From the NCBI GenBank assembly GCA_937625935.1, contig OW569363.1, positions 1-64,000 on the forward strand: a stretch of 64,000 nt of DNA, written 5' to 3'. The stretch comes from Tetramitus jugosus (lineage: Eukaryota; Protista; Heterolobosea). The position numbers and the translations under genes are program-made. Below, piece by piece: positions 6,291-12,564 of this stretch; position 1 is the stretch's first letter, and every line of letters starts with the position of its first letter. A model generated the notes under the pieces. That model was not told the DNA's origin. It saw only the letters and a program-made list of their open reading frames with translations, and did no database searches.

Positions 6291-6557
6291 CAACAAGATA
6301 ATAATTGTTTGCTCTGTATCTCTTCTTGGCGGATGAAGAGATGGAAATCTCTTGTTGTTATTTTTTTCTGTTGTTACTCTTCAATGAACGGCCTCCTTGA
6401 CACTTTAGTTTTCGTATTTTAAAGTGTCAAAATGCCATGTGACAGCATTCTTATTCAGAACAATCATGATTAATGGATGTGAATCGATTGAGAATTTATT
6501 ACACACCCATATTATATTTACAGTAATGGATCACCAAAAATTTAAAATACAACAACC

Positions 6558-8066
6558 CTATTTCATCAAGCAAATATCACCGTTCTCTGCAACTTCACAT
6601 GATGTACATCTCACTTGCTGTTCAATTCTATTGCTGGTTGAGATTGGTTGATTGGAACGACAATCGTTTCTGTACACTGTCACTCCCTTACAATTTCCCT
6701 TGTATGCCTCCACATAGGCATCGAAAACTTGTTGTACAGTGACGTTATTGGACATGTTAATGGTCTTTGAAATGGCTTGCTCAATATTCTTTTGCCAAAT
6801 TGATTGCATTCGGATATGATCAGAAATGGGAAGGGAGTTGGCTTGAGTAAACATTGGCTCGATAGCGTATCCTTCATTGCCTAGAACTGAAGTAATACCA
6901 CCGGTCGGTTGCACACAAGTCAACGAAATGTTTCTATAGTCTTTTCTGTACATGCAACATCCCTTCTCCTTGGCCAACTCTCTACTCGCTTCTCTGGCTT
7001 TATCCGTAATAAAGAACGAAACCTTGTCTGCGAGTTGAAACGCTTCTTCAGAATTATATGAAACGCTCATCTTTTTCAACAGATCAGCCCATCCACTGAT
7101 GCCTAATCCTATCCTTCTGCACTGTAATGACACCTCCTTCATCAACGGGTCAGGTATGTCCAACAGATCGACTACATTGTCAAGAAATCTGACTCCATTC
7201 TTAGTCAATTGTCCTAATCTCTCCCAGTTCATTGACATAGTTTCGGTGTTATACAAGGTGGGAGCATTCAAGTTGATTACTCCCAAGTTGCACGTTTCAT
7301 TGTCATGAAGAAATTGTTCCCCGCATGGAACAGATGCTTTTACAGTGCCCAAACATCGAGTTGCTAGCTTAGATGAATTTTGAACTCTGTCAATGAAGAC
7401 GACACCAGGATCACCACACCTCCATGCCAGACTCGAAATATACATGAGCCAATCCTTGGCCGATTTCATAGTATTCCCCCAGTAACATTCAGATGATGGC
7501 ATCAGCACTTGATTCATAAACTCGTCAGTGATGGCCACAGAAATGTTAAAGTTATACAGCACGGTTGAGTTGAGCTCGGAGTTGTCGGCCTTATACGAAA
7601 TGGTCTCCTGAAACTTTGGATGATCGAGCGAAATGATTGCCATGTTTCCTCTCTTTGGTCTGTTCAGTAATACGATGGAATCATTCAATTGTGATAGCTG
7701 CTGAAGTGTTTGAACAGGATCAGTCGTATTCAAGCTAAAACCGATTCCAATGGCATTCTCCCATAATACAGTGGACCTTGACTTAACTTGTTCCAAGTTT
7801 TCGTCATTTACCTCTCCAATGACACTACAGTTAGGCTGAAGCTTTCTGTCCGGACCAGATCCTGCCAGTGTGTTACCAGAAGGTATAAATTCTTTCGATA
7901 TCATCATCTGATAAAATTCTTGTTTCCATAGTGCCTGTAGAATGGTGTTGACTTCATTTTGTGATACACGATGACTCACTTTCTCACAAAGGTTCGTGAA
8001 ATCGTTGAATTGATACTTTAGCTGGTGATATTTTTGTTGTTCTTCTGCTGGTTGCTGTGTTGACAT
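6558..8066 (-). CDS. Minimal class II-like (NrdJ-type, adenosylcobalamin-dependent) ribonucleotide reductase, divergent active-site loop
   Basis: Intronless, 502 aa. Motifs: FIPSGNTL...PNC (redox Cys), NFNISV, AWxCGDPGVVFIDR, VPCGE...CNLGVINL, RRIGLG, RN...QPTGG, AISKTIN, KGVTVYR, and a C-terminal CTSC. Confidence 0.9.
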   Translation of the reverse strand: MSTQQPAEEQQKYHQLKYQFNDFTNLCEKVSHRVSQNEVNTILQALWKQEFYQMMISKEFIPSGNTLAGSGPDRKLQPNCSVIGEVNDENLEQVKSRSTVLWENAIGIGFSLNTTDPVQTLQQLSQLNDSIVLLNRPKRGNMAIISLDHPKFQETISYKADNSELNSTVLYNFNISVAITDEFMNQVLMPSSECYWGNTMKSAKDWLMYISSLAWRCGDPGVVFIDRVQNSSKLATRCLGTVKASVPCGEQFLHDNETCNLGVINLNAPTLYNTETMSMNWERLGQLTKNGVRFLDNVVDLLDIPDPLMKEVSLQCRRIGLGISGWADLLKKMSVSYNSEEAFQLADKVSFFITDKAREASRELAKEKGCCMYRKDYRNISLTCVQPTGGITSVLGNEGYAIEPMFTQANSLPISDHIRMQSIWQKNIEQAISKTINMSNNVTVQQVFDAYVEAYKGNCKGVTVYRNDCRSNQPISTSNRIEQQVRCTSCEVAENGDICLMK

Positions 8067-9366
8067 CAAATTTATTAGTTGGTTTTCAGGGTATCAGAGG
8101 TTGGTTGTTGCCTTGATTTTTGTTGAAAAGTGTTGAAAATGTCAACGCCAGGATAACATTCTTTTTGAAGGACCCTCCTTCCTTCAATACGATGACAAAA
8201 ATAGAAACAATCGAACAAAAAATAGTGACATTCCCACACTTTTCACTCCAACTCACATACACATCACTCATTGGATCCCTTTTTCGGAAATTCGACCAAC
8301 TCTATTCGACCAACGAATAGAGTTGTAGTAAGCGAGTGTAACCGAGAATTCACAGTAGTAGTCGACACTATTCTGAACCAACACGGAATAAGAGTTGATG
8401 AATTTGACTTACAAAACTCAACAATTATTTTGATAAAAGCCTTGTCTAGTCCACTTTCCGTCTCAAATAAGGTGCTCTCTGTGATCGATTCTGGATCGCA
8501 AGGTCTTGCTCCTCCTGCTGCCCTGGCAGTGTATTTTTGATTTAATTGACTTCATTGAAATCTTGGGAACTGCTTCCCATCCTGTTTTCATCAGACTGTC
8601 CAATAGACCGATGGTGTTCCGAACTCGTATCAAACCAAGAATAGACGATAGAAAGTACCAAGAGAATCCATTCTACAAATTGTACTCTTTAGAGTGTCTA
8701 TTGTCCCTTTGGTCGTGTCAAGATGTTGCTACAGAGAAGGATGACAGTGGGGGTCAAATTCTGTGTGTTCGACCAACCTCGGGCAAGGTGATATATGGTA
8801 AGGGTTGCCGTTAGTGAGAATGGTTACATCAATTAGTACTCCTTTTTCTCAGTTTCGTTCAATATCCTATTTACTACACTTTGAATACAATCAAAAGGTA
8901 TCCCAAGCTGCTCCAACAAGAGATTGCAATCCACCACAGTTTTACTACGAATTTGTTCTCATTGTTGTCTTTATTGAGAGGTTCTGAAACGAAGGTTCCA
9001 AAACTAAAGTTTTGGCCGCAACTTTATGTCTGGGATTATCATCAATGATGAATGACAGCACCGAGATACTTCAGAAAATCTCAGTTAGAGCGATGAAATT
9101 TGAGCTGCCTTCGTTTGATCCGGTGACCAAATTGGAATTTCTCCATGGACTTTTTGTCTCGAAGAGCCAAGGCAACAAAGCGAAAAACAGAATCGAAAAT
9201 TCTATATCCTTTGATTCAGTGAAGAGATACACCCAAATTAAGGAATTCACTCAGATTTTTTGAGATATTCTTGGTTCCACATGGCAAAAATATACACAAT
9301 CTGAATACAAGAGAGTGAAAAAAGTGAACACAATTGAGAAGAAACAACAAGAACATTCCACATTTT

Positions 9367-12300
9367 ATGAACAACAATAATATTTATAGCACTAGTGATA
9401 CTTTGGACAGTGAAGTAATCACGGTACTGGATGAACCTGCACTTGAGGTTTGTGAACCCAAGCCCATTACACCTACTCGTTGCTCTCTGGACTATCAAAC
9501 CTTCAAGGCCGAAGTAATCGAGGCAAGAGCAAGCTTGGATGTAGGTGTTCAACCGGCACACATTTCTCCAGAGGTGCAGCAAAATTTGGAGGAAGACTAC
9601 CACAAGATTTCTGCCTCAGACTTGCTCAAGAAACTGGAAACGGATCAAAACAAGGGACTCACAACCAAAGATGCAGAAGAAAGATTGAAGAAATATGGAC
9701 CCAACACAATCCAACCTCATAAAGGAATCTTTATGAAGATTGTCAGGTTCTTTGCTCATTTCTTTAGCGGATTTGCTTTACTCTTGTGGCCAGCGGCTAT
9801 CCTGTGTATCATCGCTTGGAAGCCATTGGGCAATCCGAACCCCGATCGAAACAATCTCGTATTGGCCGTCATTTTGATAGTTATCATCTTCATCCAAGGA
9901 TTTTTCGAAATCTGGCAAGAGAAAACTTCCGGCAAGATCATGTCAGGAATTTCCAGTATGCTACCATCGATTGTAAAAGTGATGAGAGATGGCCAACTCA
10001 TTCAAATTGCCATGGGTGACCTCGTACCTGGAGATATTGTTCATTTGGGTCTCGGTGATAAGGTCCCTGCTGATGTTCGACTCTTGGCAGTGTCAGGTCT
10101 CAAGTTGGACACATCCATGTTGACTGGAGAGAGTGAACCAGTGAATTGTGTGACTGAATGTACAGATGCCATGGTTCTTGAGTCCAAGAATTGTGCTTTC
10201 CTTGGAACAAGTGTCGTGGAAGGTAGTGGAGTCGCGCTGGTGATTCATACCGGACAGAAAACTGTCATGGGCAGTATTACAAAAGCAGCATCCAAGACAA
10301 AGCAAGCCACTTCATCATCTGCCTTGCACAAAGAAATCAGAAGATTCGTTATTGTGGTGTCAACCCTCGCTATTTCTACTGGAATAATGATTATCGTAGT
10401 TTGGGCGGCTTGGTTAAGAACTTCGTATCCAAAGTTTCTGACACTCAGTGCAGCTATTGTCACAGCCCTGGGAGCAATCGTGTCCTTCTGTCCGGAGGGA
10501 ATGCCGGTGTGTGTTACGATGACACTCACCTTGATTGCAAAGAGAATGGGAACCCAGAAAGTATTGGTAAAGTCGCTGATGACGGTGGAAACTTTAGGAT
10601 GCGTCAACGTGATTTGCTCCGATAAGACAGGAACATTGACCATGAACAAAATGGCAGTCATGCATCTCTATATTGGACAGAAGTTGATAATGTATGGAAA
10701 GGAGGTGGTGGAAATGTTTGCATCGAATCAGGCCATGAAAGAAATGTATACCATTATGTCGCTGTGTAACCGCGCATTCTTCGAAGATGATAGTATCAAG
10801 TCTGGTGTAAATATCAATGAAAGAGAGGTTATAGGTGATGCTTCTGATACGGCAATGTTAAGATTCGCAGAAGAACTGGATTCTGTAGCGGAATTAAGAG
10901 CTCGATTTCCAAAAATCTGTGAAATTCCATTTAACTCCAAGAACAAATACATGCTAACCATATGCTCTCAACCGGATGATACCAGACCACTATTAATGAT
11001 GAAAGGTGCAGCTGAAATTATCATGAATAGATGCTCAACTCTGTTGGATGCCAATGGCAATGAAGTACCTTTGACTGACAGAATTAAGGAAGACCTCGTG
11101 AGACAACAGGAATACTTTGGAGAGTGTGGGGAACGTGTACTTGGTATCGGTAGAAGATATCTCTCTGAAACAGATTATGAGTGTGAAATTCATGAGTTCA
11201 ATGCAGATATAGTCAACTTCCCCACAAATGACCTGTGCTTGGTAGGATTGGTTGCATTGCTGGATAAACCACGATTGGAGGCAGGTGAAGCAGTCGAGAA
11301 ACTGAGAAAAGCTGGTATTAGAGTGGCCATGGTCACCGGAGATCACCCAACAACTGCAACTAGTATTGCACGGATGGTAAACATTGTTCGAGGAGATTGT
11401 ATCAAGTTCAGTATGGAGTCTTGGAATCAATATGAGCCCTCAGAAAACCAGAAGCTGTACAAGAAGAAAACCAATGTCCCTAAAATTGTTGATCAGGGAC
11501 TTGTAGTTCCTGGATCTGAGATCCCTTCATTAACTGATGAAGCGTGGAACTACATTCTGACACATGAAGAATTGGTGTTCGCACGCACAACTCCAGACCA
11601 GAAACTGAGAATTGTTAAGGAGTTTCAAAAGAGAAAGAATGTTGTTGCTGTCACTGGTGATGGTGTAAACGATTCCCCTGCTCTAAAGCAAGCTGATGTT
11701 GGAGTATCAATGGGTTCTGGAAGTGATGTCGCTCGTGAAGCTGCTGATCTCATCCTATTGGACAACAACTTTGCTTCTGTTGTGGTAGGTGCAAAGTATG
11801 GACGTTTGGTGTTTGAGAATTTGAAGAAAGTGATCGCTTATCTACTTCCAGCCGGTACATTTTGTGAGATGTTGAGTATTCTCGCAGTGATCTTTTTCGG
11901 ACTGCCAGTTCCATTGTCTTCCATTCTCATGATTTCCATTTCTGTTTTCACTGATGTAGCCAATTGCATGACTTTGATATTTGAACAACCAGAGTCTGAT
12001 CTGATGAATTACAAACCTAGATCTATTACCGGCGAGAGAATTGTTAACTACAGATTGTTTTTACAGTCCTACATCTTTGTTGGAATTCTTCAGGCTGTCG
12101 GAGCTTTTGGCATGTGGTTCTGGTTTATGTACCAGTTCGGTGGTTTCAAACCAAAGGAGTTGATCTTTGTGTTTGACAAGTGGACTGCTGGTTACATGGG
12201 TAGAACTCAATCCGAACTCAACAAGCTTACAACTCAAGGACAGAGCGTATTTTTCATTGCTTTGGTATGCGAACAATTTGGAAATCTGTTACTCATCAGA

Positions 12301-12564
12301 ACAAGAAGAGTATCATTCTTCAAGCATCTACCATGGAGTTCCCAATCAAGAAATCCATGGTTGCCAGTCGGAATGTTCGTCTCTCTCTGCATGGCCATTA
12401 TGATCGTGAATATTCCATTGTTCCAGTACTTGTTTGGTACTGCTAGCATTCCCTACAAGTTTTATTTTGCCCCAATAGCAATCGGAATGGTCATCTTCTT
12501 CTTGGACGAGTTGAGAAAGTTAGGCACAAGGCGTTTCCCACGAGTATTCTTCTTCTCTTGGTGA
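9367..12564 (+). CDS. P-type ATPase, type IIC (Na+/K+- or H+/K+-ATPase alpha-like)
   Basis: TGES, PEG, ICSDKTGTLT phosphorylation site, EIPFNSKNK, KGAAE, MVTGDHP, TGDGVNDSPALK, about 10 TM helices. First ATG at 9367. Confidence 0.95.
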   Translation: MNNNNIYSTSDTLDSEVITVLDEPALEVCEPKPITPTRCSLDYQTFKAEVIEARASLDVGVQPAHISPEVQQNLEEDYHKISASDLLKKLETDQNKGLTTKDAEERLKKYGPNTIQPHKGIFMKIVRFFAHFFSGFALLLWPAAILCIIAWKPLGNPNPDRNNLVLAVILIVIIFIQGFFEIWQEKTSGKIMSGISSMLPSIVKVMRDGQLIQIAMGDLVPGDIVHLGLGDKVPADVRLLAVSGLKLDTSMLTGESEPVNCVTECTDAMVLESKNCAFLGTSVVEGSGVALVIHTGQKTVMGSITKAASKTKQATSSSALHKEIRRFVIVVSTLAISTGIMIIVVWAAWLRTSYPKFLTLSAAIVTALGAIVSFCPEGMPVCVTMTLTLIAKRMGTQKVLVKSLMTVETLGCVNVICSDKTGTLTMNKMAVMHLYIGQKLIMYGKEVVEMFASNQAMKEMYTIMSLCNRAFFEDDSIKSGVNINEREVIGDASDTAMLRFAEELDSVAELRARFPKICEIPFNSKNKYMLTICSQPDDTRPLLMMKGAAEIIMNRCSTLLDANGNEVPLTDRIKEDLVRQQEYFGECGERVLGIGRRYLSETDYECEIHEFNADIVNFPTNDLCLVGLVALLDKPRLEAGEAVEKLRKAGIRVAMVTGDHPTTATSIARMVNIVRGDCIKFSMESWNQYEPSENQKLYKKKTNVPKIVDQGLVVPGSEIPSLTDEAWNYILTHEELVFARTTPDQKLRIVKEFQKRKNVVAVTGDGVNDSPALKQADVGVSMGSGSDVAREAADLILLDNNFASVVVGAKYGRLVFENLKKVIAYLLPAGTFCEMLSILAVIFFGLPVPLSSILMISISVFTDVANCMTLIFEQPESDLMNYKPRSITGERIVNYRLFLQSYIFVGILQAVGAFGMWFWFMYQFGGFKPKELIFVFDKWTAGYMGRTQSELNKLTTQGQSVFFIALVCEQFGNLLLIRTRRVSFFKHLPWSSQSRNPWLPVGMFVSLCMAIMIVNIPLFQYLFGTASIPYKFYFAPIAIGMVIFFLDELRKLGTRRFPRVFFFSW

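Follow-up and report, generated by a model that had tools for sequence, protein, structure and literature searches.

How much of a ribonucleotide reductase (RNR) can be lost while its catalytic residues are kept is the question raised by a gene near a telomere of the heterolobosean soil amoeba Tetramitus jugosus. The gene lies within the first 64,000 nucleotides of contig OW569363.1 (NCBI GenBank assembly GCA_937625935.1, forward strand), a stretch that is here called the window and to which all coordinates refer. It occupies positions 6558–8066 of the minus strand, as do all features of the coding sequence discussed below, and translation of these coordinates gives an intron-free open reading frame (ORF) of 502 aa that starts at an ATG (8064–8066) and ends at a TAG (6558–6560), the stop codon being counted in the interval. 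From the ORF and from Pfam and NCBIfam matches the product was annotated as a short protein derived from NrdJ, the class II type of RNR. It belongs to a conserved family that is expressed and subject to selection although loop 1, the beta-hairpin and an asparagine of the active site are missing; the rest of the catalytic set is kept. An earlier note, made from the sequence of the window, had described an intact, intronless 502-aa protein without naming its strand, and both the ORF and colinear RNA contigs bear this out; the motifs that it quoted (finger loop, redox cysteines, thiyl-radical cysteine, glutamate and CxxC) all fall at their places on the translation.

A short protein family related to NrdJ

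The match to the ten-stranded alpha/beta barrel of RNR is far beyond chance, with Pfam PF02867 scoring 184 bits in the 502-aa protein and an AlphaFold2 model, built on 86 relatives, reaching a mean predicted local distance difference test score (pLDDT) of 91.3. The best NCBIfam models are of NrdJ types (TIGR02504, 306.5 bits, below the cut-off of 399.95), NrdJ_Z being the best-scoring model type, and the class I models score at most 120 bits versus 306 for the NrdJ hidden Markov model (HMM). The closest solved structures are those of Thermotoga maritima NrdJ (PDB 1XJE, 3O0Q, 3O0O), with a template modelling score of 0.82 in Foldseek and, in VIA-align, a Z of 42.6 and a root mean square deviation of 1.6 Å with 445 of about 617 residues aligned. 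The earlier description of the gene as a reduced RNR homologue of class II descent, present in a eukaryote, holds.

Conservation was counted over 86 aligned short proteins of 406–546 aa, the window protein included, and compared with 34 long NrdJ. At finger-loop position 246 every one of the 86 short proteins carries Val, whereas all 34 long NrdJ carry Asn. The same division runs through the protein search, in which each short match (406–546 aa) has VPCGE and each long match (at least 690 aa) NPCGE. Val is also present in a 99%-identical sequence (P0001), in a second copy of the gene on T. jugosus contig C37 and in three ORFs of IMG/VR. A profile scan of that database returned mostly phage NrdJ, with VPCGE in the three short ORFs only and NPCGE in 77 phage NrdJ loci; a scan of IMG/VR with a single sequence gave no match. 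Among bacteria and archaea, represented by one genome per species (185,579 genomes), the best 80 loci all carry NPCGE and reach no more than 34% identity.

In a maximum-likelihood tree of 90 short sequences and 12 NrdJ the short ones make up a single clade, with a support of 100 in the Shimodaira–Hasegawa-like approximate likelihood ratio test (SH-aLRT), and within the short family identity has fallen to 35–45%. VPCGE is a conserved family trait and not private decay. The earlier note had pointed to Val in place of a near-invariant Asn and had named two outcomes that would undo its reading, namely close homologues with NPCGE and full loops, or a grouping with a characterised RNR subclass. Neither was found, since the short relatives all have VPCGE and reduced loops and the family forms a clade of its own. 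By sequence it clearly descends from NrdJ, yet it departs from NrdJ in the Asn, in loop 1, in the hairpin and in falling below the curated HMM cut-off.

Catalytic residues kept and elements lost

The finger loop, ASVPCGEQ (7314–7337), holds Val246 together with the thiyl-radical Cys248 and Glu250. Cys80 (7827–7829) and Cys259 (7290–7292) are the redox cysteines, equivalent to T. maritima C134 and C333, and the C-terminal CTSC (6597–6608; C487 and C490) is presumed to be the disulfide shuttle to thioredoxin or glutaredoxin. Cys80, Pro247-Cys248 and Glu250 are found in 86/86 short proteins, Cys259 in 85/86, Cys487 in 77/86 and Cys490 in 81/86, and all of them are common to long NrdJ. Strand beta-H and the distal phosphate loop read CVQPTGGIT (6891–6917, with Cys384 and G390), the P-T-G being kept in both the short family and long NrdJ. 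Of the QPTGGIT noted previously as unusual, the Gln was seen in the window protein and in Naegleria lovaniensis, while the GG (G390) is a trait of the family at large (81/86). Strand beta-J, TVYRND (6663–6680), is a motif of class II type (T-V-Y-R-D in the family) without the Tyr-Tyr dyad of class I; T463, Y465 and R466 are conserved as in NrdJ, and position 467 is Asp in 75/86 and Asn in the window protein. The barrel, thiyl Cys, Glu and redox Cys pair are the same as in T. maritima NrdJ, with which the FNISV, PTG and SKTIN motifs and the TVYRD strand are also held in common.

The reading that we tentatively prefer, at a confidence somewhat short of an even chance, is that of an effector-independent radical nucleotide reductase using adenosylcobalamin (AdoCbl). 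A nucleotide would be bound through its phosphates, the Gly of the apical loop suggesting a triphosphate, and Cys248 would be converted to a thiyl radical that begins chemistry on the ribose, with Glu250 as general base. Cys80 and Cys259 would supply two electrons and become a disulfide, which the CxxC tail and a thioredoxin-type protein would re-reduce. Because the phosphate pocket, thiyl Cys, Glu, Cys pair and CxxC tail are all kept, the protein may be expected to work as a nucleotide reductase over multiple turnovers. The radical would most likely derive from the 5'-deoxyadenosyl group of AdoCbl, because the TVYRD strand lining the adenosyl pocket is kept and an adenosyltransferase is encoded in the genome; that beta-J carries the class II motif and not a Tyr-Tyr dyad points to the same initiator.

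The conservation of these residues also bears on whether the protein is a catalytically dead homologue with a non-enzymatic role, such as sensing nucleotides, or regulating or sequestering a subunit of another RNR. Beta-herpesviruses, with their inactive R1 homologues, would be the precedent, and a dead protein would fit with the combined loss of the Asn, loop 1 and hairpin and with a family found mostly on virus-like contigs. However, the loss of catalytic Cys and Glu that marks the beta-herpesvirus type is not seen here, where both are kept, and across 86 sequences there is little or no variation in the remaining catalytic residues and the redox tail, which is unexpected in a dead enzyme. 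We consider a dead homologue improbable.

The apical phosphate loop, P-S-G-N in the window protein (7872–7883), reads P-A/S-G-N across the short family, most typically P-A-G-N, versus P-N-S-P in long NrdJ. In NrdJ the P-N-S-P loop belongs to diphosphate reducers and P-A-G-R to triphosphate reducers, a Gly at the third position marking reduction of nucleoside triphosphates (NTP) (PMC8365446), so that the loop found here resembles the NTP type and not the type acting on nucleoside diphosphates. These two motifs and two rare ones cover essentially all of 1655 NrdJ (PMC8365446); because P-A-G-N is not among them, the short family is probably missing from that data set. An NTP-type NrdJ from our own searches (P0108) shares the P-A-G of the apical loop, the N-C before the first redox Cys and the GEQF after the finger loop, but it differs in its NPCGE, in possessing an ATP-cone, loop 1 and the hairpin, and in a tail with a zinc finger, and its apical loop ends in Arg instead of Asn. 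Relative to T. maritima NrdJ the short family has replaced Asn320 by Val, P-N-S-P by P-A/S-G-N and Gln203 by Leu.

Losses were read from an alignment with the long NrdJ of the same protein search and from a HMMER alignment to T. maritima NrdJ, of which about 170 residues are without a counterpart in the 502-aa protein by structure alignment. No Pfam match to the ATP-cone was found in the protein, as the earlier note had proposed, and the segment between GIGF and KRGNM, likewise described there as shortened, has about 15 residues fewer than in canonical NrdJ. This segment contains loop 1, the binding site of specificity effectors, and in class I and II alike binding of the radical cofactor is ascribed to the long beta-hairpin (PMC9531940). 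The canonical loop 1 (R-L-R-P-x-G ... G-x-A-S, about 15 residues) has shrunk to S-L-N-T-T, the deletion site being GIGFSLNTTDP (7716–7748), and the Arg that contacts the effector phosphate has gone with it. In T. maritima the effector is held by Asp141, Lys158 and Arg171 (PMC4728125 Table 4); in the short family the counterpart of Arg171 has been lost with the deletion and the column of Lys158 varies, and an acidic residue persists beside the Asp141 column.

Loop 2, L-x-(H/N)-R-P-x-R-G-N-M (7641–7670), is highly conserved in the short family as H-R-P-x-R-G-N-M and is one residue shorter than the canonical loop. At position 133, where long NrdJ have the base-reading Gln, 76/86 short proteins have Leu. 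From the absence of loop 1 and the change of the loop-2 Gln to Leu it can be argued that the enzyme would lack specificity control by deoxynucleoside triphosphates, and the loss of the effector loop thereby supports the term 'allosterically unregulated' used in the earlier note.

The largest deletion was overlooked in that note, all four of whose listed differences from canonical enzymes were confirmed. The entire beta-hairpin that follows I-E-P-x-F is gone, a loss of about 55–60 residues by alignment (roughly 511–565 of T. maritima) that has left the junction IEPMFTQANSLPISDH (6816–6863), and the model has no strands at residues 386–434. A smaller hairpin following F-N-I-S-V is deleted as well, part of the N-terminus is missing relative to T. 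maritima, and the IscU-like and zinc-finger C-terminal domains have been swapped for a short tail. In the model this tail runs for about 35 residues after beta-J, is predicted to be disordered and has no glycyl-radical domain. Substitutions that set the family apart are found at position 384, which is Cys in 85/86 short proteins versus Thr in 34/34 long NrdJ, at position 102 (Trp versus His) and at position 424 (Trp versus Phe).

As the elements described as docking AdoCbl and the beta tail of class I are both missing, an RNR with another kind of initiator has to be weighed, in which a partner protein or a different cofactor would act on the open top of the barrel. The near-invariant Cys384, Trp102 and Trp424, which are not in canonical NrdJ, would be compatible with such an arrangement. 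The class II character of beta-J, its want of a Tyr-Tyr dyad and the disordered tail with no glycyl-radical domain all speak against it, as does the finding that no neighbour gene is conserved in eight virus-like contexts, and we regard a non-AdoCbl initiator as rather unlikely.

Comparison with other compact RNRs places the family apart from class I. The least that class I and II enzymes have in common has been put as three features, namely a shared dimer orientation, loop 1 and the hairpin, with class O, the 'most minimal' RNR, as the yardstick (PMC9531940). The class O alpha protein of Synechococcus phage S-CBP4 is small, viral, free of an ATP-cone and nearer to class II than to class I, but it keeps loop 1, the beta-hairpin, the Tyr-Tyr dyad and a ferritin-like neighbour gene (PMC9531940), none of which the short family has; class O was also absent from the sequence and fold matches of the 502-aa protein. 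The compact class Id alpha proteins of Flavobacterium johnsoniae and Actinobacillus ureae (6DQW, 6DQX) also have no ATP-cone and align with a Z of 40–41, but identity is 18–19% and, as class I enzymes, they depend on a beta subunit. Membership of class O or class I is ruled out by the beta-J strand, which reads Y-R and not Y-Y, and by the absence of the hairpin that receives the beta-subunit tail.

Genomic setting, transcription and distribution

The window begins with a telomere repeat, (CCCAAA)n, of about 130 repeats (1–793), which lies about 5.8 kb from the gene; on the other strand it reads TTTGGG, and a few CCCAA variants occur near the end. No ORF of at least 120 aa was found between this repeat and position 6557, so at the level of ORFs the gene is the first intact one next to the telomere, as had been proposed. 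The next gene inward is an intact ORF of 1076 aa (9334–12564, plus strand) that by sequence looks like a P-type cation ATPase.

A block comprising the gene and about 150–170 bp on each side (6389–8222) is duplicated at 95.6% identity on contig C37. The second copy (C37:5322–6839) is intact and, like the first, close to a contig end, here a degenerate, C-rich and telomere-like one some 5 kb away, and the duplicated block measures only 1.85 kb. Between the two copies the synonymous divergence (dS) is 0.105 and the nonsynonymous divergence (dN) 0.0136, giving a dN/dS of 0.13; both copies are under purifying selection.

The gene is transcribed. Its sequence is contained in soil metatranscriptome runs from several studies, with RNA contigs spanning 6482–8103 and 6483–8076 (about 99% identity) and a contig from an oligo-dT library spanning 6510–7922, all without joints, and in two of three RNA runs compared there is zero cover outside the gene. 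The approximate extent of the mRNA is 6482–8103 on the minus strand, colinear with the genome and without an intron, with untranslated regions of about 37 nt at the 5' end and about 75 nt at the 3' end. A likely polyadenylation signal, AATAAA (6495–6500, minus strand), stands some 13 nt short of the point where the RNA contigs stop. These contigs were assembled from environmental relatives and show transcription, not expression level. Absence of expression and a dN/dS near 1, which were to have told against a working gene, are therefore both contradicted.

A subtelomeric gene may be suspected of being a contaminant, an assembly error or a decaying pseudogene. The GC content, third-position GC (GC3) and codon use of the gene match those of host genes, and a DNA run of the organism covers the locus continuously. 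Together with the two intact copies at a dN/dS of 0.13, the transcription and an N. lovaniensis orthologue set among housekeeping genes, these findings rule out an artefact, to which we give next to no weight.

That orthologue, C9374_008039 (57% identity), is the sole named member of the family and is annotated as an uncharacterised protein. It is chromosome-internal and not subtelomeric (PYSW02000031.1, about 443–445 kb, 65 kb from the contig end), and its neighbours are NDH2, threonyl-tRNA synthetase, an AAA protein and uncharacterised genes. The window protein groups with its C37 paralogue, with C9374_008039 and with a metagenome sequence (P0003) at a support of 100, and P0004–P0006 join this group at a support of 99 to give a clade of seven rows with a third eukaryote-like contig; a near-identical cluster-mate of P0004 is found on a contig with a split eukaryotic gene. 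No named protein of N. gruberi or N. fowleri is among the protein-search matches, which suggests, without proving, a patchy distribution.

The gene had been taken as an isolated eukaryotic oddity. It is instead a member of a family carried mostly by giant-virus-like contigs. Giant-virus hallmarks on these contigs include VLTF3 (a poxvirus late transcription factor), DUF5767, the NCLDV capsid (a weak match), DUF5757, DUF5654 and a C962R-type primase, and the contigs, up to 366 kb in length, also carry numerous ORFans, MYND and RING fingers and kinases. Most labels in the nearest cluster of the ESM Atlas are Nucleocytoviricota. Two divergent VPCGE members from IMG/VR (L048 and L063, on contigs of 113 and 103 kb) are located on high-GC viral contigs made up almost wholly of ORFans, with one weak tail-fibre-like match and one ADP-ribosyltransferase-like match; these may be giant viruses or large phages.

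On one 46-kb metagenome contig (that of P0027) the short RNR gene sits between a deoxynucleoside kinase gene and a thymidylate kinase gene on the same strand, in a neighbourhood that also holds a YTH-domain gene and a PIF1 helicase. This flank was seen in one lineage only. A conserved neighbour gene that would indicate a partner or pathway was found in none of the eight virus-like contexts and three IMG/VR loci, where the neighbours are mostly ORFans.

Heterolobosean amoebae thus share the clade with giant-virus-like genomes. In the tree the eukaryote clade falls within the virus-like rows, but support for this placement is weak (SH-aLRT 83), and an approximately unbiased (AU) test does not reject the eukaryote clade as sister to all virus-like rows (p 0.455); because of these two values, transfer may have run in either direction. 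The literature searched yielded no paper on giant-virus RNRs of class II or NrdJ type, nor on this short family.

Other RNR genes are present in the 26.35-Mb genome of T. jugosus. A class I large subunit is encoded on C33 and a small subunit on C8, and the genome also encodes a cob(I)alamin adenosyltransferase. A monomeric class II enzyme of RTPR type is encoded on C17 (498190–501745) as a single ORF of 1185 aa with an intein (Pfam Intein_splicing, residues 464–800), and a further copy of this type is located on C16 (409029–410794). Monomeric class II RNR is thought to have reached eukaryotes by lateral transfer (PMC3605638). The RTPR-type proteins are AdoCbl-type RNR barrels too, but they belong to another subfamily, with RNR_Alpha and RNR-II insertion domains, and match the window protein weakly. 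In the window protein neither domain gave a Pfam match (PF17975, PF21995), and TIGR02505 scores 36 bits versus a cut-off of 340. RTPR-like copies with in-frame stops at C4:4751–6312 and C40:287925–288889 are likely to be pseudogenes; as the one on C4 is again some 5 kb away from a contig end, RNR-type genes recur in subtelomeres.

The short gene is therefore a third RNR-type system and not the only oxygen-independent one of the organism. The oxygen-independent back-up role suggested for it earlier is weakened, as canonical monomeric class II genes already fill that role.

The proposed reductase and its significance

Several points weigh against an effector-independent reductase that uses AdoCbl. 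The beta-hairpin has been described as the binding site of both known cofactors, and an effector bound on loop 1 is said to assist in closing the site around B12 (PMC11067019, PMC9531940); both elements are absent here. Because the hairpin is missing the cofactor would sit in a more open site, and the loss of hairpin and loop 1 would make the canonical closure around it impossible, which is the weakest step of the proposed mechanism. The B12 dependence proposed in the earlier note can therefore not be assumed, the hairpin described as the dock for AdoCbl being gone. Structures of class I and II enzymes show the finger-loop Asn and the Glu holding the 3'-OH of the ribose (PMC4728125 Table 4). 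As an invariant Val replaces this Asn, the ribose would have to be held differently from that in every characterised class I or II RNR. Mutation of the finger-loop Asn abolishes catalysis. The NrdJ score below its cut-off and the want of a conserved neighbour count in the same direction, and with class I and canonical class II enzymes present a third plain RNR is not obviously needed. In favour of a reductase stands the viral member flanked by deoxynucleoside kinase and thymidylate kinase.

That Val is strictly invariant speaks for a role of its own, be it in packing of the ribose or cofactor or in a change of substrate. In the latter case the protein would be a thiyl-radical enzyme of RNR fold whose reductive machinery is unchanged but whose substrate or product is a different one, for example a nucleotide that is modified or altered at the 3' position, or one dedicated nucleotide instead of all four, with specificity set by Val246 and a fixed loop 2. 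A Val that stays invariant while the family has diverged so far would indeed point to a positive role and not to a tolerated loss, and loop 2 is conserved in a form unlike that of NrdJ, with the base-reading Gln mostly Leu. Loop 1, which switches among four substrates, is absent, and the host already has two conventional RNR systems. On the other side, the phosphate loops, Cys pair, Glu and CxxC tail are exactly of ribonucleotide reductase type, one viral copy lies between the two kinases of deoxynucleotide metabolism, and we know of no class I or II type RNR homologue that catalyses another reaction. We consider a changed substrate less probable than the AdoCbl-using reductase, but still a fair possibility.

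The family might also stand for a new functional class, namely a small single polypeptide with the full thiol and thiyl machinery that dispenses with the known initiator-docking elements and the Asn, and that would use an undescribed way of generating the radical or carry out chemistry other than 2'-deoxygenation, spread between giant viruses and amoebae. This, too, is a possibility to which we would assign a minor share of belief.

Should the family prove to be an active reductase, its proteins, at about 410–500 residues, would be the smallest self-contained RNR. They would have no allosteric specificity site and would redefine what is needed for cofactor binding and ribose handling. If it turns out to be something other than an ordinary RNR, it would to our knowledge be the first class I/II type RNR homologue with other chemistry. 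In either case it adds a gene of nucleotide metabolism to the set common to giant viruses and their protist hosts, and an amoeba with three RNR-type systems makes a physiological division of labour among them testable.

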